This document shows, in pieces, positions 1-62,028 of a DNA stretch of 64,000 nucleotides (its first letter is position 1; every line of letters begins with the position of its first letter). A program made the position numbers and the translations under genes. Under the pieces are notes generated by a model, which worked only from the letters and a program-made list of their open reading frames with translations, did no database searches and was not told the origin of the DNA. Location: sequence record MW825358.1; one strand, written 5' to 3'.

Positions 1-450
1 TTCATGAGCAGCACGCTCACCTCCAAGCGTGGCTGGTTGCGCAAACACGTGTTCGGCTCCCCGTTGTACTTTACCTTCCGGGCAGTGATTTCCTCGCTGT
101 CTGATGAGCACGAGTATGATGAGTTGCACCTGCCGTGGGGTGTGGCAGTGTCCACCTATGCACTGCACCTGACCTCGAAGATGTATCGGATGATTAATGA
201 AGAAACCGGTCGTCCGTTCACACCCAATGAGGTGCTCAAGCATCTGCGTGAGCATACCTTGCGGTATAGCCCCTTGTTGGACCGGCTCTTTGATGAGCTG
301 ATTGCCGAATGTCCATACAAGGGATTGCCAGTGCTGTTCAACCGTAATCCTTCACTGGACCGCGGTTCGATTCAGCAGTTCTTCGTGACCAAGATCATCA
401 AAGACCCGGAGATCAACGCCATCTCTATGTCTGTGTTGACGCTTAAGGCT
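1..450 (+). CDS. Non-virion RNA polymerase beta' N-terminal subunit (phiKZ gp55-like), exon 1; 5' end lies outside the window
   Basis: NRNPSLDRGS motif resembles beta' NRxPxLH. The frame reads ...SVLTLKA up to 450 and joins PNADFDGD at 862 after intron removal. Confidence 0.9.
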
Positions 451-861
451 CTTTAACGGGTCCTTCCGACAGTAATGTCGGTCGATCATCTCTCTAATTG
501 CTGGGACCTCTGACGCCAACTATCTTCGGATAGGCGGACACACTACTAAAGCGGAGTGGGTAACCACAAACGTCCAGTTTAAATAACGTGTGTCTTTTTG
601 CAGACAATCAGCAGCCAAGCTTCCTAACGGCATTACAAGTAACGTCGCGGTCACATGAAACCGCAGCCTAACAATACGGGTGACGTGAAGTAATTGATGC
701 GTGGAAGAAGGTTCATCGACTAGCCGAAAGGCGTAGGGTGCAAGCGCATCCGAAATGGGAGACTTCCGCGACGGCGGAAGAAGATATAGTCAGTACCTAG
801 ATGTGAATCTAGGCGGGAGTCAGCGCTCCGGGTCCGTGTAGCGAACGGATTGGACAAATAG
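451..861 (+). mobile_element. Group I self-splicing intron without an internal ORF
   Basis: Exon ends in U and intron ends in G. Core elements: P AATTGCTGGGA (496-506), Q AATCAGCAGC (606-615), R GTTCATCGACTAG (711-723), S AAGATATAGTC (781-791), with GACTA/TAGTC P7 pairing. Splicing restores KAPNADFDGD. Confidence 0.93.
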
Positions 862-1056: not shown

Positions 1057-1120
1057 GAAAGCAGGGACGTTAAAGTCCCTGCTGTTGTACCCTACCTACC
1101 TATAAATCGAGGTTGATCAA

Positions 1121-1447
1121 ATGTCTGAGAAGAACTTCACCCGTGCCCTGGCCCTGTCGCTGAATAACCTTCTGCCGATGGCCAAGACCACACTGGAGGT
1201 GATGGATAACCAGATCGAACACGCCGATGCCCATGCCAGCCGGCTGGAGCACGAAGTGGGTGATAAGGCTGCCGCTGAGGACGTCCGCCAGTCCCAGGCG
1301 ACCGATGTCATCTCCCATCGCGCCGCAGTGCGCCGTATCCACCGGGCCGAAACCCTGCTGGCTCAGTTCAACGAAACGGAGCAGCATGTCAAGGATCTGG
1401 AGGAAGATCACTTCGACGGCGAGTTCGAGATCAAGTTCCCCGAGTAA
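1121..1447 (+). CDS. Hypothetical protein, paralog A of the acidic C-terminal motif family
   Basis: 108-aa ORF with RBS-like GAGG and phage codon bias; ends DHFDGEFEIKFPE. Confidence 0.8.
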   Translation: MSEKNFTRALALSLNNLLPMAKTTLEVMDNQIEHADAHASRLEHEVGDKAAAEDVRQSQATDVISHRAAVRRIHRAETLLAQFNETEQHVKDLEEDHFDGEFEIKFPE

Positions 1448-1449
1448 CC

Positions 1450-1489
1450 GGCATAATGCGGAGGACCTTCGGGTCCTCCGTACTGTGCC
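1450..1489 (+). terminator. Hairpin with UUCG loop
   Basis: GCGGAGGACC-TTCG-GGTCCTCCGT directly after a stop codon. Confidence 0.7.
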
Positions 1490-1507
1490 CCAACTAGATT
1501 TTTCTTC

Positions 1508-2014
1508 ATGACAATCTATCCGAAGATCCCGGGTCTGAACGTGCTGGTTGGGGGCGTGCGCCTGTCTCTCAAACCAATACTTTCCAGCAACCCTGATCCT
1601 GAGCTACGTGTACAGGTGCGCGCCGGGTTGACCGGCGATGTCGTCACGCATGGCTACTACATCGGTCTGCATGATGAAATCGGACGCCACAAACTCGAGT
1701 TGACCGAGCGCGATCTCAACCACATTACTCGGATGTATTTTCAACGCATCCGCACGCGCTTGGAATTGGAAGCCATTTTGCGCGGTAGCAATCTGTGGTG
1801 GACAACCATCTACCTGAAGTTGTGCCCGAATGTGGAGAATTTTGTCATACGCAATGTGACTTCTGAATGGGAAAAGATGGCGGCAGGCCACATCCCTGAT
1901 GATGAACTCTATATCGAGATCATCCGCGGTGAAGATGGGTTTTTAGCGTATCGACAGGATCATTACGTAACCGCTTTGTCGGACGTCGTAGATGGCGATA
2001 AAGTGAACAACTAG
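1508..2014 (+). CDS. Hypothetical protein
   Basis: 168-aa ORF that fills the intergenic space; no recognised motif. Confidence 0.7.
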   Translation: MTIYPKIPGLNVLVGGVRLSLKPILSSNPDPELRVQVRAGLTGDVVTHGYYIGLHDEIGRHKLELTERDLNHITRMYFQRIRTRLELEAILRGSNLWWTTIYLKLCPNVENFVIRNVTSEWEKMAAGHIPDDELYIEIIRGEDGFLAYRQDHYVTALSDVVDGDKVNN

Positions 2015-2023
2015 GAAGCGATT

Positions 2024-2149
2024 ATGGACATCAACAAATTACACCGCGCTCGAGTTTTGTTAGATAAGCTCGATAGCAGCCGCCTGTCCGTGCGGGGTAT
2101 GGGTGACGATAGCTACGATGGGGAGTTCAAGATTAAGTTCGAGGACTAA
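2024..2149 (+). CDS. 41-aa miniprotein, paralog B (absent from the ORF track)
   Basis: AGGAAG RBS; MDINKLHRARVLLDKLDSSRLSVRGMGDDSYDGEFKIKFED* aligns without gaps to the C-termini of 1121 and 2207. Confidence 0.8.
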   Translation: MDINKLHRARVLLDKLDSSRLSVRGMGDDSYDGEFKIKFED

Positions 2150-2206
2150 CTGGATCTGAAAACTATACCATCCCTTTGTCAACCGCCCACCACAAAGAGA
2201 AAAGTC

Positions 2207-2611
2207 ATGTCCCAACAAGACGATGGTGAGATTATGCCCAACGTATCGATCACCCATGTGGAGATCGTGGGTAATGCAGATGACCTGATCGCCAACCTGC
2301 CCGAACGGGTACGGGATCAGGTCCTGGAAGGAAAGCGCGCTGCGGATCTGACCCAGCTATTGGGTCTGGCACTGCGCGGCGTCACGCCCCTGGCCGATTT
2401 GTGGCGCAACCGCCTGGAAGGACTGCATGAGGAAAACGCTGATGGCGGAATCCAGGTGCAAATCGATCTGGCCAAGAAAGCCGTCTCGCGCGCCGACCAG
2501 GCCCTGACCAGGTTGGCCAACACATCGCTGGACATCACCAATTTGACCGATGATGCTTTCGATGATACCTTCCAAATCATCTTCACCGACGAGGTCGATG
2601 AAGAGTATTGA
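2207..2611 (+). CDS. Hypothetical protein, paralog C
   Basis: 134 aa; C-terminus DDAFDDTFQIIFTD matches the family motif. Confidence 0.8.
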   Translation: MSQQDDGEIMPNVSITHVEIVGNADDLIANLPERVRDQVLEGKRAADLTQLLGLALRGVTPLADLWRNRLEGLHEENADGGIQVQIDLAKKAVSRADQALTRLANTSLDITNLTDDAFDDTFQIIFTDEVDEEY

Positions 2612-2662
2612 TGTGGATTTTTACACTCACTTGCTACCGTATAGCACCCTAAAGGAAATGCA

Positions 2663-3283
2663 ATGCCAATCGTGATTGATGGCGATGCGCGTACATTCCG
2701 GGCGGCCGCATACGGTCGTCCGCATGAAGGCACCGTCCGATTCCTCCAGCGCCAGTTTGAAGATCCGTCCTTGGCTCTCCGTGTGGCCGACACCTCGTTC
2801 TTAGATCGAGCCCGGGCCATGTTCGATGACAACTATGGCGATGAAGCCATGGCACGCATCGAGGCCGTGCGGAACCGACTGCGCCGCAGTTGGAATCCCA
2901 ACACGATCTTCCGACTGGAGACAGTGGAAGAGTTCCAACAAGCCAATCCGCTCATGCAGCGTTGGGTCATGGCACAGCCCTTTGTCCGTCAACAGTTCAA
3001 GCGTGGCGCTGTCTCTGGCTACTTGGGCTCGTATGTGGACTTGGATGCCAAGTTCTCCGGCAAGGACCATTACGACTGGCGTCGCGCCATGTCGGGCATG
3101 GCCGTGTATGACGATGAGAATGGCTGGCTGGCCACCACCTACGGTGATGAGGAGCTGGAGGGCGATGAGCCCTTGTCCTTTGAGGACAAGCTCCATATCC
3201 AAGATACCTGGGAAATGGCTGAGTACTACCTGATGAGCGGTAAGCGCGACATCACCTCCCCTGCGGATGATCCCTGGGGTTAA
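2663..3283 (+). CDS. Conserved jumbo-phage protein; by synteny possibly phiKZ gp59 (Imp3)-like
   Basis: 206 aa, AAGGA RBS, position downstream of the beta'N gene. The gp59 identity rests on synteny only. Confidence 0.5.
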   Translation: MPIVIDGDARTFRAAAYGRPHEGTVRFLQRQFEDPSLALRVADTSFLDRARAMFDDNYGDEAMARIEAVRNRLRRSWNPNTIFRLETVEEFQQANPLMQRWVMAQPFVRQQFKRGAVSGYLGSYVDLDAKFSGKDHYDWRRAMSGMAVYDDENGWLATTYGDEELEGDEPLSFEDKLHIQDTWEMAEYYLMSGKRDITSPADDPWG

Positions 3284-8166: not shown

Positions 8167-9753
8167 ATGAAAATGACCTCCATCTCCCCGCCGGGGCAAG
8201 GTCTGACGACCATTACGCTCGAACACCAGGGCATGACCCTGAACTGGGACGTTAGCAGTACCTACGCTCGGACCCAGTCCAAACTGGAAGAAGACATCGA
8301 CGTAATGACGGTGTTTGAAGAGATCAACGCGTACTGGGCCACAATGAGTCCGGAGCGCCAGACGGCCATCTTCGAAACCTACAAGGACATCCACTCCACC
8401 TTTATCGGTGATTATGACGTGGAACTGGCCGTACCCAAACTGCGCCAGAAAGTATCCACCCTCTACAACTACCATCCGCTGTCTGAACTCCAGCATTGGT
8501 TGCAGTTCCACGGTAACGTGGGATTTCCGGCCTCGGTCAAAGAACGCAACGATGATCCGAACATGCGTCAGCCCGATCGCACGTACTTGCGCAGCGATTA
8601 TTTCGGACTGGTGAGCCTGGCGGTGGCCTTCCGTCCCATGATTCCGATCTGGGGCATGTATATCTCCCGTCGTCGTCGTGAGCTGGGCAACAACTACAAG
8701 GAACGTGAGGCGTTCCGGTTGATGTACAACACCATGATCGCCCAGTGCCCGGAGATCGAACGGTTGCATGCGTTCATTGCCTCCTACACCGCCCCGATCG
8801 CAGCCAGTGACAAGTCCCTGACCGCGGTGATGTCAGGAAGCTCTACCACCGAGCTGGCGGCCACTTTGATGGCCATGGCGTGTGTGCGGCGTCTGGCAGT
8901 GCTCTCAGTGTCGGGCAATCCTGAGGTCAACAACCTCATCGCCAAGCTCCACTTCTTCGTCAACAACAAGATCAACTCCCTGGACCGGGACATGGGTCGC
9001 CCCTTCGGTGGCCGGATCTCGGAGAAAAAGCAGACCTCAGGCAGTGGCGAGGAAAGCAACATTTCCGTGGCTGAAATGTACAAGATGAAACCGGATATCT
9101 CAGACGGTGACATCATGTCCATCACGGTCTATGCCGAAGACCCCTACCGCATGGCTGCCGCCCGGGCTCCGGACCTGCCCCTAGAGTTACTGGATCAGTG
9201 CCTGGAGAACTGCCGCAAGATTCAACCTGAAGATATCGGGGAAAACCAAATCTGGTTGGCCCGCTGGATCTGTGATCCGGTGATCCCAGCCGAAGCCATG
9301 GAGCTGCTGACCTTCGAGCCGCTCCTGAACTGTCTGGCCTTGACCCAAGCGGTGCTTTGGCACTGGGGGTTCTATGACCTGGCAGTGATCGTGACTGCCA
9401 CCCCGCTTGCTGCGGAGGAGGATGTCGTGATTGGCGCCACCGAAGGTCGTTCGCGTATCTTGAAGGAAGACCTGCTCCGCCTACAGCAGGCTTACCCTTA
9501 CGAGCTTCCCGTCAAGAAGAACACCTCGGCCCGACAGTCCAACGTCGCTGCCCGTGGCGTGGATCGTCTGGCAGAGCTGCTCACGCGCAACGATTGGATC
9601 GTCAATGCACCACAAGTGCTGGTGAGCAAGTCCACCTCCCCGCCGGGATCGGGCTTTCTGACTGCACCTGCGGACTTGAAGATCCAGCTCTGTAAGCTGC
9701 TCTTCCATCCTAATTTCAAAATCAAGAAAACAGCCACAGTGAGTAATCCGTAA
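8167..9753 (+). CDS. nvRNAP promoter-specificity (sigma-like) subunit, phiKZ gp68-like
   Basis: 528 aa; size and synteny between chmC and picA. Confidence 0.75.
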   Translation: MKMTSISPPGQGLTTITLEHQGMTLNWDVSSTYARTQSKLEEDIDVMTVFEEINAYWATMSPERQTAIFETYKDIHSTFIGDYDVELAVPKLRQKVSTLYNYHPLSELQHWLQFHGNVGFPASVKERNDDPNMRQPDRTYLRSDYFGLVSLAVAFRPMIPIWGMYISRRRRELGNNYKEREAFRLMYNTMIAQCPEIERLHAFIASYTAPIAASDKSLTAVMSGSSTTELAATLMAMACVRRLAVLSVSGNPEVNNLIAKLHFFVNNKINSLDRDMGRPFGGRISEKKQTSGSGEESNISVAEMYKMKPDISDGDIMSITVYAEDPYRMAAARAPDLPLELLDQCLENCRKIQPEDIGENQIWLARWICDPVIPAEAMELLTFEPLLNCLALTQAVLWHWGFYDLAVIVTATPLAAEEDVVIGATEGRSRILKEDLLRLQQAYPYELPVKKNTSARQSNVAARGVDRLAELLTRNDWIVNAPQVLVSKSTSPPGSGFLTAPADLKIQLCKLLFHPNFKIKKTATVSNP

Positions 9754-11255
9754 TGAAAATCACCAAAATGCTCATGCTGGAAGTGGGTACGTACGATGAC
9801 ATGTATCAGCGTCCGTACACCAGCCATGTCGATGGCGTGCACATGACCCAGCTGCAAGAAGCCACCCACTACGGCCAGAACCTGACGGCCAGCGCGCTCA
9901 GTGCAGTGGGCTCGGACATCATCCGTCCCTCCAGCACCGTCTCGGCCATGGCAGGGATCGTCAACGGCTATGATCAGCGTCGCCTGTGCTTCATGATGGA
10001 AGTTGAGTTCCCCGGCACCACCGGTGGGATGTGCTTCGTGGAGTACCTGACCGGGTACACCGATGAGTTGGGCGTGTCCACGCTGCGTGGCAACAACCAC
10101 ATGAGCATCAATCCCAACATGCGCCTGTTCTTCAACAACGTGATCCAGGCACGGCGTGTGGCGGGAGCCAACCAGTTCGGTCGCCAGTACGACACCTCGG
10201 TCAACGGCGGCTTCCAGCTGATCACCTCCGACTACCAGCCGCGCCTGACCAGCCTGCACAAGACCCCGCATCTGATGCGGCCGCAGGATGTGTTCACCAG
10301 CATGTCCATGGAACGTACTCGCTCGATCATGGGCGATCACCAGGTTTACGACACCCGGGCCACCCATGGTCCGGCGCGTGTGGCCGTGTCGGCGCGTAAG
10401 AACTCCCTGCCGGGTTCTTTCCTGTCCAGCATGCTCACCACCTGGCGTTCAGAGTCGGACAAGGCCGATCATTCCGATGATTCGACCCTGTACTCGTCCA
10501 TGGCCGCCACCGTGGCAGAGCCGACCATCTCGCGGATGCGGACCCTGAGCCAGTTGGAAGTGGCCAGTGAACTGCGTATCGGTGGTTCGGTGTCTTGGCG
10601 GGAGCTGTGCGATGCCGACGATACCGGAACGCTGGAAGATCGCGTTCAGGTGACACTGGCCTTGTCTGACCGTTCTCGGGGCGCCCTGTCCCAGCGTGGT
10701 GAGATGTGCGGTTGGAATGGCAATGGCAACTCGGCCGTGGTAGCCACCAGCTTCGTGCAGGCCGTTCCGGGCTTCATGATGCAGCTCATGCTCACGATGC
10801 TGGACTTCTCAGTGACCAATCGCACGTTGGATGGGTCCTGGCAGGTGCTGATCAATGGCGTGCAGTCCTTCAACGATGGGGATAACTCCGGACAAATCGA
10901 CAACTTCATCTTCCGCCTGACCACCGAACTCATGCCCGGCCTGAGCCGCGGCAATGAAATGGTGATGACCATCCATGCGCAGTTTGACGTCATGAGCCAG
11001 ACCTACCTGCAGGTGGACCTGGATGATGGCGAGGGCTTGGTGCCGTATATGGCTCCCAGCTTCTGCGATGGTCTGTTCGCCTCCACCCGCGCTCCTGACT
11101 CAGACACCCTGGACAACTTCGCCCACAACCTGTCCCAGGTGATGTACGGGCTGGAGCAGGACTTCTCGGCAGGCGGTATGGGCTACGGTCCGGACGATGC
11201 CCAATTCAACAACAATCAAGGTACTGGCGGCTATGGCAATTCTGGACTTCTATAA
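9753..11255 (+). CDS. picA: PicA/Imp1 phage-nucleus protein import factor (phiKZ gp69-like)
   Basis: 500 aa, TAATG-coupled to the gp68-like gene; conserved position in Chimalliviridae. Confidence 0.7.
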   Translation: MKITKMLMLEVGTYDDMYQRPYTSHVDGVHMTQLQEATHYGQNLTASALSAVGSDIIRPSSTVSAMAGIVNGYDQRRLCFMMEVEFPGTTGGMCFVEYLTGYTDELGVSTLRGNNHMSINPNMRLFFNNVIQARRVAGANQFGRQYDTSVNGGFQLITSDYQPRLTSLHKTPHLMRPQDVFTSMSMERTRSIMGDHQVYDTRATHGPARVAVSARKNSLPGSFLSSMLTTWRSESDKADHSDDSTLYSSMAATVAEPTISRMRTLSQLEVASELRIGGSVSWRELCDADDTGTLEDRVQVTLALSDRSRGALSQRGEMCGWNGNGNSAVVATSFVQAVPGFMMQLMLTMLDFSVTNRTLDGSWQVLINGVQSFNDGDNSGQIDNFIFRLTTELMPGLSRGNEMVMTIHAQFDVMSQTYLQVDLDDGEGLVPYMAPSFCDGLFASTRAPDSDTLDNFAHNLSQVMYGLEQDFSAGGMGYGPDDAQFNNNQGTGGYGNSGLL

Positions 11256-12438
11256 GCAGCTGATCGAGAGCGTCGGCGGTGTCATCGGGGAAGAGGGTCT
11301 GATCTCTCTGCGTCGCCCCGAAGATGAACCGCAGCCGTTCATGGTCACCGGTAAGCGGCTGGCCCTGCCGCTGCCGGCTCTGCTCAACCAGGGCGCTTTC
11401 AACGCCGACGGGCAGGTCATCGCCTTCCATCCGATCTGCGAGAACGTGGTGCTCAAGACCAGCCCGGTGCTGGAGAAGTTCGAGCTGGCCATGACCTTCC
11501 GTCTGACCTACGTGCTGCGTGAGTTGATCATGCAGTTGACGGCGGTGGCCGCAGATCCCAAGCAGCACAAGAAGCTGAAGATGCGTGCCCAGGGCCTGCT
11601 CTCGGCCATGCCAGATGCAGATGAGAAAACCCGTGAGGCGTTCTTCAAGATTCTGAAGAACACCACCTCAGTGGGCGATCATCCGCTGATCAGCTTGTAC
11701 GTGCGGCAAGGCGGCGGGCTCTACAACGGAGAGAAGGTCAATCGACTGGCGCGTTTCTATCCGGCTGTGGTGCGTGAGCTGGAGCGTGGGGATCGCACGA
11801 TCTACGGGGTGAAGCTGCGGCAGGCCGACGAGGCTGCCTTCCAGGCCCTGATCGAGTACATCCTGCCCGAGTACCGGGATGATGATCACTACAGCTCCCC
11901 GTCCAACTCGCTGGTGGCTCCGTCCTTCCATGCGCTGATCAAGACCTACTACAAGGTTGCCAATCAGCTCAACAAGATCACGGAGATGTACGCTGAGCAG
12001 TTGACCAACGCCGATGAACTGCGCATCCCGACCGACTGGATCGAAGATGCCCAGGACCTGGGTCAGTTCCGTGAGAAGATCCCGGTGCTGCCAGGTAATG
12101 ACGGTGCAGACGGTGCCAAGCAGGTGCGGGTCCAACCGCAGGCGGCCATGGGTGCCACGGCCACACCGGCCACTACCCCAGCCGCCCCTGTCCGTCAGTC
12201 GGGCAAGGGCCTGTCCATCGATGAGGCCCTGAAGCTGGCACAGCCCAAGCCGCCTGCTTTCGGAGGACAGCAGCAGAGCTTTGGTCGGGGCAATCGCTTC
12301 GGCCAGCAAGCGCCGCAGGATGACCTGCCGCCGTGGGCACAGAGCAGCGTCCAGAACACCTTCGCCAGTCGTGGCGGCGGTTGGGGACGTGGCGGTGGCG
12401 GCGGTGGTTGGGGCGGTCGTGGTGGTGGGGTGCTGTAA
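11233..12438 (+). CDS. phiKZ gp70-like conserved protein with an FG/WG/RGG low-complexity tail
   Basis: Likely start at ATG 11233 overlapping the picA end; tail AFGGQQQSFGRGNRFGQQ...GGGWGRGGGGGGWGGRGG. Confidence 0.65.
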   Translation: MAILDFYKQLIESVGGVIGEEGLISLRRPEDEPQPFMVTGKRLALPLPALLNQGAFNADGQVIAFHPICENVVLKTSPVLEKFELAMTFRLTYVLRELIMQLTAVAADPKQHKKLKMRAQGLLSAMPDADEKTREAFFKILKNTTSVGDHPLISLYVRQGGGLYNGEKVNRLARFYPAVVRELERGDRTIYGVKLRQADEAAFQALIEYILPEYRDDDHYSSPSNSLVAPSFHALIKTYYKVANQLNKITEMYAEQLTNADELRIPTDWIEDAQDLGQFREKIPVLPGNDGADGAKQVRVQPQAAMGATATPATTPAAPVRQSGKGLSIDEALKLAQPKPPAFGGQQQSFGRGNRFGQQAPQDDLPPWAQSSVQNTFASRGGGWGRGGGGGGWGGRGGGVL

Positions 12439-24843: not shown

Positions 24844-26196
24844 ATGAAAAACCCCAAGCTGCCCCAAATTTCGATGGAGGCACTCAATTATCAGGGCCGT
24901 TCTACTCTGCTGTTTGACCTGACCTCCGTGATCTTACTCCTGCGACAAGAGCAGGTCATGACCCAAGCGGTCCTTGATCGTAGTGGTCTGGCTGAGATCG
25001 TTCAGCGCCGTACCAAGATGCAGGTGAGGTTTTACTTAGAAGAAGGCGTGGTCTCGGCAAATCGCCATCAAACCCCACCGGTCTATAGCGGGTGCTATGG
25101 GGAACCGCCGGTGGTAGATGCCAACAACCCCTTCTACAAACTCCTGATCAAATCCGGCCAGGCGGCCGAAGGACAGGGCTCGCTTCACCGCCATCAGGCA
25201 GCACTGCGACTGGCCAGCAACACGTTGGGCAGCGTCAATCTCAAGTCTGGTGAAGTCCAAGGGATCTTTAGCTCCCTGATCTCTCGGGTGTGGCTGGATG
25301 ATTCAATCGTCCATCCCTACTCGACCCTCACCCCCGAAGAAGCAGCCGTGACGATCTTGCACGAGCTGGGACATCTGTTTAGCTTCTTTGAGACGATGGC
25401 CTATTCGGTGGCTTCGAATATGATCATCTCCACCGCCGTGGAAGCATTGCGGGAAGTGGAGGACCAGGAAGTCAAGGTTCGCCTGATCGCTCAGTCTTAT
25501 AGCCCCTTTGGGATCAAGCCTGCCGATGCCAACGCCATTGCCTCCTCTGAACCGGATGTGGCCCGCTCGCTGCTGTTGAAGTCCTTTGAGGAGATTGAAC
25601 AGTCGCGCGTCAAGAGTTCCATGCCCGATGCTGACGGTGTCTATAACTGCCGCTCCATTGAGTTTATGGCAGATCAGTACGCCATTCGCCATGGTGGCGC
25701 AGTCGCACTGGCCTCAGCAGCACATAAGTTGGCCAAACTCCATACACCTGACTATGGAAAGTCGTCTTTGGCTTTCTACGCCACCCAGGCGCTCCGTTAC
25801 GGCCTGGTAGCAAGCGGTTGCTTTGTCCCGGGACTGATCCCCTTGACCTTGATCGTCACTGCGCTGTGCTCGTTCCTGTGCGCCTCAGAGGCCATCGATG
25901 CAGATGCCACCTCCGATCCCTCTGAACGCCTGGGCTTGATCAAGAAAGATCTGGTGCAGGTGCTGAAAAATACTCGACTCGATGCCAAGCTGCGCAAGCA
26001 GATTTTGCAAGATGTTGAGGTGATTGATCAGATGCGTGCTGAGGTCAAAGAACACTCAGGCTTGTTCCGCTTTGTGTGGCGCAATGTCATTCCCGCCGGC
26101 CGGCGCCAATCCAAGATCCGTGAGTTCCAGCAAGGGCTGGAAGAGCTGATCAACAACGACCTTTTTATCAAAGCCCACCAACTGAAGGTTGGCTAA
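24844..26196 (+). CDS. Probable virion head protein with zinc-metalloprotease motif
   Basis: Start reassigned to ATG 24844 (450 aa). Propeptide ISME|A; HELGH...EFMADQYA (M48-like); hydrophobic hairpin near the C-terminus. Confidence 0.7.
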   Translation: MKNPKLPQISMEALNYQGRSTLLFDLTSVILLLRQEQVMTQAVLDRSGLAEIVQRRTKMQVRFYLEEGVVSANRHQTPPVYSGCYGEPPVVDANNPFYKLLIKSGQAAEGQGSLHRHQAALRLASNTLGSVNLKSGEVQGIFSSLISRVWLDDSIVHPYSTLTPEEAAVTILHELGHLFSFFETMAYSVASNMIISTAVEALREVEDQEVKVRLIAQSYSPFGIKPADANAIASSEPDVARSLLLKSFEEIEQSRVKSSMPDADGVYNCRSIEFMADQYAIRHGGAVALASAAHKLAKLHTPDYGKSSLAFYATQALRYGLVASGCFVPGLIPLTLIVTALCSFLCASEAIDADATSDPSERLGLIKKDLVQVLKNTRLDAKLRKQILQDVEVIDQMRAEVKEHSGLFRFVWRNVIPAGRRQSKIREFQQGLEELINNDLFIKAHQLKVG

Positions 26197-59481: not shown

Positions 59482-60839
59482 GGGAATCGCCTTTGTGGCA
59501 AGAGATTCAAACCATTGCCTTTGACCAAACGTCTCTCGCCCCCTTGTATGCCTACAAGGTCGAGTTTAAAACCAGCGAGGGCACCACCGTGCCCTTTAAG
59601 GTGATCTCCTTGTATATCAAGCGAGAATACAGTCAGTCCTTTGGTGATGAGATCATCTTAGAGGCCATGTTCCCAGCTGGGGACTACCACTATGACATCT
59701 ATCCCTACAAGCAGAACTTGCTTGCCACGGTGACACGAGAAGGGCGTCAGCGCAGCAGTGATACGGCACTGGCCACCCCTGAGCGGATTGCCCAGCAATA
59801 CCGGGCGGTGTTAATGGAGGACAACTCAGCCACGGTTATCGGTGCTCGTAACAACGTGCAGTCCAAACAGGCAATGAACTTGTCTGACGTGGTGACGGTA
59901 CAGTTCCAGCTGATTGATCTGGCCTTAGAGCGCATTCGGATGCACTCGGTGGGTGGGTTGTTCCGTAACGTTACCCCTGCATCGGTGGTGGAGTATGTGC
60001 TGACCACCGTCAGTACGGGCATGCAGCTGGATGAGGCCAATATGATCAAGGGAGTGGACATGGTCCCTTCCCCCAATCAAGATGCCTACCAGCACATCGT
60101 CATTCCGCACGGTACCCGCTTCCCCGACTTTCCTGGGTTTATGAACCGCAAGGTTGGCGGGATCTACCCGGCCGGGATGGGGGTGTACCTGCAAAGTCAA
60201 CAATGGTATGTGTATCCACTGTTTGACTTGACCCGGTTTGACAATCCAGGTACCTCCAAAACCTTGACCTTGTTTAACCTCCCCACCAATCAGCTACCCA
60301 ATGTGGAAACGACCTATCGCACCACGGCCAATCAAGTTTTGGCATTGGTGACAGGAGACGTGTCCCATGTAGATTTGAGTGAAACCAAATTACTCAATGA
60401 AGGTAACGGTACGCGCTACTTAGATGCACGTACGGTGGTAGATACGTTTGCTGTGACTGGCACCGGTGATAACAAAGCCGCTGTGACACGTGCAGAGAAC
60501 AACAATGAATTTGTCACCGATGTCCGGCAGACAGGACTGAACAATGTGGTGACCTCCGGGGCACGCATTACCTCCAATAAGTTCTTGGAGATGTCTAAGC
60601 TGGCCGCACGAACTGGAGCTAACATCCAGTGTACTTGGCAGAACTCAGATCCTACGCTGATCCAGCCTGGGATGCCGGTCAAGTTCATGTATATCAAGGA
60701 CGATCAAGTTCGCGAACTCCACGGTGTCGTGTTAGGCGCGATTCACTACGTTCAAACCTACGGTAAGGGTGTGACTGAATCACGCCACATTGTCGAATCT
60801 GTCCTCAATCTGTTCGTTGAACGCGAGCAAAGTATTTAA
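59472..60839 (+). CDS. Baseplate hub-like virion protein (phiKZ gp101-like)
   Basis: 455 aa, beta-rich; IQPGMPV..Y late-fold pattern typical of hub proteins; synteny. Confidence 0.6.
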   Translation: MELRESPLWQEIQTIAFDQTSLAPLYAYKVEFKTSEGTTVPFKVISLYIKREYSQSFGDEIILEAMFPAGDYHYDIYPYKQNLLATVTREGRQRSSDTALATPERIAQQYRAVLMEDNSATVIGARNNVQSKQAMNLSDVVTVQFQLIDLALERIRMHSVGGLFRNVTPASVVEYVLTTVSTGMQLDEANMIKGVDMVPSPNQDAYQHIVIPHGTRFPDFPGFMNRKVGGIYPAGMGVYLQSQQWYVYPLFDLTRFDNPGTSKTLTLFNLPTNQLPNVETTYRTTANQVLALVTGDVSHVDLSETKLLNEGNGTRYLDARTVVDTFAVTGTGDNKAAVTRAENNNEFVTDVRQTGLNNVVTSGARITSNKFLEMSKLAARTGANIQCTWQNSDPTLIQPGMPVKFMYIKDDQVRELHGVVLGAIHYVQTYGKGVTESRHIVESVLNLFVEREQSI

Positions 60840-60848
60840 GGAGTTGTC

Positions 60849-61358
60849 ATGTCCAATCCCACAGCCCATGATAAATTGCTGGGCCTTATCAACGCTGCCA
60901 ACCCGGGGAAGAACTTCACGCTGGAGGAAATCTCCTTCGGCGCACCTTCCACGGTGACGGGTACGAAAAACACGCAAGTCACAGTGACCGCCCAAAGCGG
61001 CTCGCCCTATAGCGGCTCGCGCCAGGTGACCTACAACCGTGTGTCACTGGCGGGCGCACCGGGTGTAGAGAGTACCGAGTTCACAATGGACCCGGACTGG
61101 GTCAACATTGCAGATCTGATTCCCGCCGTGGCAGCCCGCTTCGGTCGTTTGATCGATGCCAGTGATATCACCGACGGCGCCCTGCCGGCGGCGGATCAAG
61201 ACGGGGTCATCACTGTACTCCTGACAGCTGCGACCAGTTCGCTGTTGTGGATTGGTTCTGTGCAGCTGACCATCGTGCCGGCTTTGATCCCGCTGTCTGA
61301 AGCCATTGCCAACAATGAGTTGGACGGTCTGGATCTTGACGATCTGACTGTGAGCTAA
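60849..61358 (+). CDS. Tail fibre/tail-tip family module (phiKZ gp131-135 N-terminus-like)
   Basis: LINAAN...NTQVTVTA...YSGSRQVTYNRVSL motif. Confidence 0.65.
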   Translation: MSNPTAHDKLLGLINAANPGKNFTLEEISFGAPSTVTGTKNTQVTVTAQSGSPYSGSRQVTYNRVSLAGAPGVESTEFTMDPDWVNIADLIPAVAARFGRLIDASDITDGALPAADQDGVITVLLTAATSSLLWIGSVQLTIVPALIPLSEAIANNELDGLDLDDLTVS

Positions 61359-61864: not shown

Positions 61865-62028
61865 TAGCAGGCACCTCCACGCTTACGAAGATCCACACAC
61901 CCCGGAGGCGGGGCGGTGGTGCCCTCAGTCTTCAACGGAGCCGAACCACGCGGCTGTGCGGTAGAGGCACAGCCGTACAATCCACCAACGCTCAGCGTCA
62001 GCAGAAGAGCAACAAGAAACGCTTTCAT
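61864..62028 (-). CDS. 54-aa lipoprotein resembling the BTLCP N-terminal segment (absent from the ORF track)
   Basis: MKAFLVALLLTLSVGGLYG|CAS lipobox; TTAPPPGCVDLRKRGGAC*; TAATG overlap with the protease gene. Confidence 0.78.
   Translation of the reverse strand: MKAFLVALLLTLSVGGLYGCASTAQPRGSAPLKTEGTTAPPPGCVDLRKRGGAC

Follow-up and report, generated by a model that had tools for sequence, protein, structure and literature searches.

A clade-restricted family of small acidic proteins with a common C-terminal module between the nvRNAP beta'N and Imp3 genes of Xanthomonas phage LucasX

The closest described systems are the protein import factors of phage phiKZ, among which the core proteins Imp1, Imp3 and Imp6 are conserved and Imp2 (gp47), Imp4 (gp48) and Imp5 (gp287) are clade-specific and cargo-specific and are proposed to work with this core as adaptors; Imp3 (gp59) is required for Imp1 to function properly, and its gene belongs to the p18-imp3-orf60-orf61 operon (10.1101/2024.03.27.586873). 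Here, three related genes of Xanthomonas phage vB_XciM_LucasX (MW825358.1; genome of 305,651 bp) are described, which lie in a 64,000-nucleotide stretch, called the window, whose position 1 corresponds to position 62001 of the record and to which all coordinates refer unless the record or another genome is named. Like Imp2, Imp4 and Imp5 of phiKZ, the products of this LucasX family are small, of unassigned fold and confined to one clade, and the genes are located directly 5' of an Imp3 homologue. However, the three phiKZ factors are not module-sharing paralogs and are encoded at another location, and no sequence similarity to the LucasX family was seen for gp47 and gp48, the two that were compared; in a single-sequence search, hence a weak negative, neither of them had a match at E <= 1 in LucasX or in its relative RTH11. 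The same slot, between the gene for the beta'N subunit of the non-virion RNA polymerase (nvRNAP) and the Imp3 gene, is occupied by small, clade-specific, uncharacterised genes in other chimalliviruses (gp57, gp58 and gp58.1 in phiKZ, gp108-113 in 201phi2-1, and the slot genes of RVTF4 and Xoo-sp14). These differ in lacking the hairpin signature and the acidic tail described below, and homology to them was rejected, since the family profile found no match in any of these four phages (best E > 1). The three LucasX genes are:

1121..1447, plus strand: LUCX_62, 108 amino acids (aa), the shortest family type (A-type), nearly the module alone
2024..2149, plus strand: LUCX_64, an annotated coding sequence for a 41-aa miniprotein, an in-frame deletion derivative of the E-type
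2207..2611, plus strand: LUCX_65, 134 aa, a family member with a 45-aa N-terminal extension

Judged by a similarity well beyond chance, LUCX_62, LUCX_64 and LUCX_65 are paralogs, as an earlier note on this DNA had proposed from their common C-terminal motif. In BLASTP comparisons, the miniprotein aligns without gaps to the 108-aa LUCX_62 protein with 14 of 39 residues identical (E = 6e-11), and the latter aligns, also without gaps, to the 134-aa LUCX_65 protein with 12 of 40 identical (E = 4e-05). A six-frame scan of the entire LucasX genome with the family profile returned only three matches, namely LUCX_65 (E = 8.7e-34), LUCX_62 (E = 1.3e-28) and LUCX_64 (E = 1.3e-13), the miniprotein matching profile positions 48-88 only, while the same six-frame scan of RTH11 revealed six adjacent genes and no copy elsewhere. 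The open reading frames (ORFs) and the C-terminal sequences quoted for them are exactly as the earlier note gave them, but its description of 2024-2149 as unannotated was mistaken, as GenBank has this ORF as LUCX_64. Its further statement that the shared motif is gapless holds for the three LucasX copies and fails in relatives, where two subfamilies carry a one-residue insertion. The upstream helix said to be common to the two longer proteins is indeed present in both, and its stretch L..xL...L..xxP.A has nearly invariant L, L and P residues across the family. LUCX_62 and LUCX_65 contain a complete module composed of the helix 1 signature, helix 2 and tail, and LUCX_64, without helix 1 and most of helix 2, has an incomplete one. 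In LUCX_62 the helix 1 signature is found at residues 6-21 and the end of helix 2 with the tail at residues 70-108; this gene is preceded by a good Shine-Dalgarno (SD) sequence, GAGG, and its product is 43% identical over the full length to that of a 111-aa gene of the related genome L003. LUCX_65 is likewise 43% identical over its full length to family protein P0017, and an SD sequence, AGGAAG, is situated 6 nt ahead of the LUCX_64 ATG.

Beyond LucasX, a tblastn search of about 50,000 phage genomes with the long members found only LucasX and RTH11, a word-based search of 5.8 billion proteins added members on three metagenomic jumbo-phage contigs of 310-317 kb, and when 1.84 billion cluster representatives were searched exhaustively with HMMER, only 40 proteins reached E <= 0.001 and 35 of these also E <= 1e-10, with the LucasX proteins recovered as P0002, P0005 and P0038. 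The motif is conserved in relatives. In every match the module is found at the C-terminus or a few acidic residues short of it, preceded by a part of 0 to about 250 residues, and all members are strongly acidic, with a median isoelectric point (pI) of 4.5 and a median net charge of -14. None of the three LucasX proteins belongs to a Pfam or PHROG family, and the 42 family members gave only isolated sub-threshold matches to these two collections; a sequence profile search of the PDB gave nothing at E < 0.3, no solved structure matched, and BFVD contained no match besides the LucasX proteins themselves. By these searches, the proteins constitute a previously undescribed, clade-restricted family of small acidic chimallivirus proteins.

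What defines the family is a C-terminal module of about 85 residues, consisting of helix 1, an acidic turn, helix 2 and an acidic-aromatic tail. Helix 1 has the consensus L-T-Q-x-L-G-V-x-L-R-x-V-L-P-x-A, the end of helix 2 reads R-A-x-x-A-L-x-x-L, and the 25-residue tail, L-x-I ... D-D-x-F-D-x-x-F-x-I-x-F-E-D, shows the highest conservation in the family. An AlphaFold2 model of the 91-residue LUCX_65 module built from 15 sequences has two long antiparallel helices with a predicted local distance difference test score (pLDDT) of about 93 followed by a tail (pLDDT 60-77) that lacks regular secondary structure. With 42 family sequences and the full 134 residues of LUCX_65, the mean pLDDT is 88.2 and the predicted template modelling score 0.71, with helices at residues 33-76 and 80-104, the tail at 105-128 and an acidic end, EVDEEY; here the hairpin has pLDDT 93-98, residues 101-110 reach 97 and residues 111-120 reach 95. 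In these models, the 39-aa motif corresponds to the last 15 or so residues of helix 2 plus the tail of about 24 residues and is not a separate unit, and the earlier view of it as a self-contained helix plus strand gives way to a hairpin-plus-tail module whose tail is predicted at pLDDT of about 95 in the deeper alignment. High confidence in an extended segment normally means that it is packed against the rest of the protein. Because the extended tail is modelled with such confidence, its conserved L, I, F, F, I and F side chains may lie on the hairpin of the same or a partner chain, and the module most likely folds as one unit with the tail clasped on its own or its partner's hairpin. Oligomerisation is suggested since antiparallel helical hairpins usually pair into four-helix bundles.

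The hairpin itself is not distinctive, as Foldseek searches of the PDB and BFVD and a wide VIA-align search returned only generic hairpins and self-matches. The closest structures are generic, with template modelling (TM) scores of 0.5-0.58 to an Atlas model, Z of about 8 and Foldseek E > 1, and the ESM Atlas offered hairpins only and no match for the long N-terminal head of P0018. The module resembles HisKA/DHp domains, Rop, the ESCRT-III hairpin and designed two-helix bundles in its two long antiparallel helices; however, these have no conserved acidic-aromatic C-terminal tail, and the resemblance is that of any hairpin and implies no homology. For HisKA/DHp in particular, the His box is absent from the family and the likeness (TM 0.5-0.58, Z about 8) is again generic. 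Acidic, aromatic-ending C-terminal tails that dock on partners are found in bacterial SSB (the tip) and in T7 gp2.5 and gp4, which likewise have an acidic stretch with conserved Phe residues at the extreme C-terminus in otherwise different proteins, but in the LucasX family the tail extends further, over about 25 residues, follows a fixed hydrophobic pattern and is not disordered in the model, where it packs into the domain. Mimicry of the PhuZ C-terminal tail was rejected, as the LucasX PhuZ homologue ends quite differently, and so was mimicry of a chimallin docking tail, as the chimallin termini of this clade are Arg/Gly-rich and not acidic. Chimallin C-tails of the Xanthomonas-type clade (compared in L001:2991-4934 and in L002, L003, L010, L012, L016 and L018) contain 8-14 Arg plus Lys in the last 60 residues versus 1-2 in phiKZ, 201phi2-1 and RVTF4. 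The idea that the family tracks such tails as an electrostatic partner was dropped as non-discriminating, since Xoo-sp14 has an Arg-rich tail and yet lacks the family.

All eight genomes with context (LucasX, RTH11, L003, L004, L005, L010, L012 and L016) share one gene order, chimallin, nvRNAP beta'N, one to six family genes and the Imp3 homologue, and every contig with sufficient flank has the fuller order DNA polymerase, a 361-aa gene on the opposite strand, chimallin (PF25677), nvRNAP beta'N (PF00623), family genes with a companion gene X, and the 206-aa Imp3-type gene. The family genes per genome are:

L010: one, of 337 aa
L012: two, of 106 and 188 aa
L016: two, of 141 and 153 aa
L003: three, of 111, 178 and 179 aa
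LucasX: three, of 108, 41 and 134 aa
L004: four, of 109, 178, 164 and 179 aa
L005: five, of 115, 178, 172, 175 and 119 aa
RTH11: six, of 106, 110, 190, 156, 179 and 175 aa

This is a fast-turning-over multigene family under birth-and-death evolution beside chimallin, whose genes are gained and lost inside one fixed slot extending from nvRNAP beta'N to the Imp3 operon.

The miniprotein can be placed within this turnover. Its best matches are three 179-aa E-type members, to which it is 69%, 64% and 58% identical (25 of 36 residues and E = 6e-15 for the best), with residues 6-41 of the miniprotein aligning to residues 144-179 of each; at the other end, its residues 1-5 (MDINK) are also residues 1-5 of the 179-aa orthologue, and a stretch of 19 nt across its start codon recurs unchanged at the beginning of the 179-aa L003 gene. 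Furthermore, L016 is one of the two closest relatives of LucasX when judged by Imp3 identity (58%), and its slot, with X (151 aa), 141 aa, 153 aa and Imp3 in this order, parallels the LucasX arrangement of X (168 aa), 41 aa, 134 aa, Imp3, such that the E-like 141-aa protein (P0012) is the positional orthologue of the miniprotein and the 153-aa protein the full-length orthologue of LUCX_65. These alignments are most simply explained by the in-frame loss of about 100-138 internal codons from a member of 141-179 aa. Measured on the 179-aa form, such a deletion would remove codons 6-143, comprising the N-terminal head, helix 1 and two thirds of helix 2, and would leave the ribosome-binding site, start codon, end of helix 2, tail and stop codon. 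LUCX_64 is on this evidence a truncated paralog rather than a separately evolved motif-only gene, and the notion of a purpose-built gene for the motif alone is not borne out, as both its start and its last 36 codons match members of 141-179 aa. The deletion reading is supported by a parallel case, as the LUCX_65-type gene is reduced in RTH11, L003 and L005 to an ORF of 4-5 codons that aligns with its start and stop; read from the alignments, this is the second case in the array of a gene lost almost entirely in frame. Remnant ORFs lie at L002:12104-12224, L003:9964-10083 and L005:8889-9008 (aligned with window 2150-2662), with the promoter-like element described below and the Imp3 leader intact.

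The miniprotein is probably translated. It is recorded from both NCBI and an independent Logan assembly, albeit as a singleton cluster from one genome only, and it retains all five invariant residues. Over its 36 motif codons, the ratio of nonsynonymous to synonymous substitution (dN/dS) against full-length orthologues is 0.12-0.23, compared with 0.15-0.27 among the full-length genes, with synonymous sites near saturation (pS about 0.67), and in motif identity to orthologues (18-24 of 35) it is on a par with the intact A-type gene and ahead of LUCX_65.

Directly after the miniprotein stop codon, a candidate regulatory element was found:

2150..2185, plus strand: conserved promoter-like element, in which 2164-2181 form an 18-nt core

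In LucasX and L016 it stands ahead of the LUCX_65-type gene, in RTH11, L003, L004 and L005 ahead of the Imp3 leader, and in L012 ahead of both family genes. The LucasX genome contains the 18-mer, TATACCATCCCTTTGTCA, at two places only, namely 2164-2181 and a site 5' of LUCX_18 (record 25500-25517), and a shorter related variant is located 5' of chimallin; attempts at a genome-wide consensus yielded only the two exact copies and the chimallin variant, and a DNA-pattern scan of IMG/VR with the element found two contigs only. The element is probably a copy of an early promoter, by which LUCX_65 and the Imp3 gene would belong to a single early unit, and, by analogy with the p18-imp3-orf60-orf61 operon of phiKZ, the Imp3 transcription unit probably begins with LUCX_65.

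Taken jointly, we favour with moderate confidence a reading in which this clade-restricted acidic family uses its C-terminal module as an assembly or docking base for variable heads and the LucasX miniprotein is a deletion derivative. We regard the paralogy, distribution, synteny, deletion origin and predicted fold as shown by these data. The module would be the common base, a role we infer, and the variable N-terminal heads would carry specificity. Several points weigh against this reading. DSSP assigns no regular structure to the tail, whose packing on the hairpin is deduced from pLDDT alone and not from coordinates, and modelling an obligate oligomer as a monomer can be misleading; the identity of the promoter comes from sequence sharing; and conservation of the miniprotein motif fits continued function and, equally, a recent deletion. 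Functionally, a role at the phage nucleus is the leading candidate, tentative as it is and well short of an even chance, because the genes keep a fixed place beside chimallin and Imp3, are probably co-transcribed with Imp3 and occur in phages (LucasX and RTH11 searched) that gave no Imp2 or Imp4 match.

Somewhat less probable is that the motif is a free docking peptide, a helix plus a beta-augmenting strand, for ChmA, PicA/Imp1, Imp3 or nvRNAP, with the miniprotein selected as a competitor or regulator. The strong conservation of the tail and its flexibility in the shallow-alignment model would suit such a peptide, as would the five invariant residues, good SD sequence, open frame and paralog-level motif conservation of the miniprotein, the location among nucleus and import genes, and the existence in phiKZ of clade-specific, cargo-specific factors for which no homologue was found in LucasX or RTH11 (Imp2 and Imp4 searched). 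However, the miniprotein is a singleton whose position in relatives holds a full-length gene or none, and the deeper alignment models the tail confidently as part of the domain. The docking tag is made less likely still by published work in which chimallivirus cargo showed no linear import signal (10.1101/2024.03.21.585822).

The main rival to a nucleus role, doubtful in itself, is that the proteins serve early anti-defence or host takeover, for instance as acidic DNA mimics or inhibitors of host enzymes, with the hairpin as a dimerisation scaffold and the position reflecting only shared early timing. Their pronounced acidity (median pI and charge as above), small size and helical make-up point this way, as do the copy number of one to six with repeated gain, loss and truncation, usual for arms-race genes, and the presence ahead of LUCX_65 of an element shared with the 5' regions of chimallin and LUCX_18. 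On the other hand, searches of Pfam, PHROG, PDB and BFVD gave no similarity to a known anti-defence or DNA-mimic family, the strict slot conservation in 8 of 8 genomes is unusual for mobile accessory genes, and acidity alone is weak evidence.

A narrower form of the nucleus role, which we regard as unlikely, is that the family provides the clade's cargo adaptors for PicA/Imp1-Imp3 import, with the heads choosing the cargo and the miniprotein acting as a head-less competitor that tunes import; if this were true, the hairpin with its acidic tail would represent the first transferable element found for docking or licensing at a phage nucleus. Weaker than the anti-defence rival, and improbable, is a role as nvRNAP accessory or specificity factors, in which the module binds the polymerase and the heads select promoters or regulators. 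The family immediately adjoins the beta'N gene in every genome, and small acidic helical proteins with C-terminal tails are polymerase co-factors in other phages, as in the case of T4 gp33, but the proteins have no transcription-factor homologue, the polymerase gene is set apart from the family by conserved hairpins, and other chimalliviruses keep the polymerase with unrelated genes in the slot. That the similarity reflects chance or composition, or that 2024-2149 is non-coding, is hardly conceivable, since, short and confined to one genome as the miniprotein is, it has a profile E of 1.3e-13 in a six-frame genome search, 69% identity to orthologue C-termini, and a conserved SD sequence, start and stop.

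The surroundings of the three genes contain the following further features:

1060..1083, plus strand: GC-rich hairpin after beta'N exon 2 and 5' of LUCX_62, within the terminator annotated in GenBank at 1049-1097
1458..1480, plus strand: GC-rich hairpin with a TTCG loop between LUCX_62 and LUCX_63
1508..2014, plus strand: LUCX_63 (gene X), 168 aa, outside the family, companion gene of the slot
2663..3283, plus strand: LUCX_66, 206 aa, homologue of phiKZ gp59 (Imp3), phrog_3254, with a tblastn match to PHIKZ059
9753..11255, plus strand: LUCX_74, 500 aa, homologue of phiKZ gp69 (Imp1/PicA), E = 1.9e-35 at phiKZ 59655-61085

The location of the cluster at the beta'N end of a nucleus and import locus, also put forward in the earlier note, is confirmed by the nearby homologues of chimallin, beta'N, Imp3 and PicA/Imp1: chimallin (LUCX_59) is situated just 5' of the window, positions 456/1056 mark the end of the nvRNAP beta'N gene, and LUCX_66 forms the conserved 3' border of the slot. 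LUCX_74 has no name in GenBank ("hypothetical protein") despite its PicA/Imp1 homology. A group I intron (Rfam RF00028, 54.7 bits) is present at window 441-861 in the beta'N gene, just before the catalytic NADFDGD codons, such that exon 1 ends near 447 and exon 2 begins near 862 in the LUCX_61 frame; GenBank gives the split gene as two separate hypothetical coding sequences, and the exons were compared separately, exon by exon. The beta'N gene is uninterrupted in RTH11 and L003, and an endonuclease-type ORF is found at the intron site in L004 and L010. In L010, an R2K-type ATP-grasp gene (PF14243/PF18299, 254 aa) at 11064-11828 lies between the 337-aa family member and the Imp3 gene.

LUCX_62 is bracketed by the two conserved GC hairpins, and the one at 1458..1480 is kept in relatives with compensatory changes. 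Gene X is kept in the slot in 7 of the 8 genomes with companions of 150-170 aa, and LUCX_63 has no Pfam or PHROG match. It lacks an SD sequence, and its leader (1448-1507) consists of the GC hairpin followed by CTGTGCCC.CAA..GGATTTTTCTT.ATG. This leader is almost identical in five genomes (LucasX, L002, L003, L004 and L005), in which the X proteins are just about 50% identical, and may be a conserved regulatory or promoter element.

For protein sorting in phages that form a nucleus, we know of no targeting element, either linear or modular, and to our knowledge the cargo-specific import factors of phiKZ are confined to Pseudomonas phages. Because it is clade-specific, combines one module with interchangeable heads and is located between the shell and polymerase genes and the Imp3 operon, the family offers a concrete candidate set for such import factors in Xanthomonas phages, which is probably expressed early. 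At the same time, the LucasX miniprotein provides a natural truncation allele, in which the tail is present without hairpin or head. Should the members turn out to be ordinary accessory or anti-defence genes, they would still represent a new family with defined borders, with the miniprotein as a deletion product and a birth-and-death slot documented beside chimallin.

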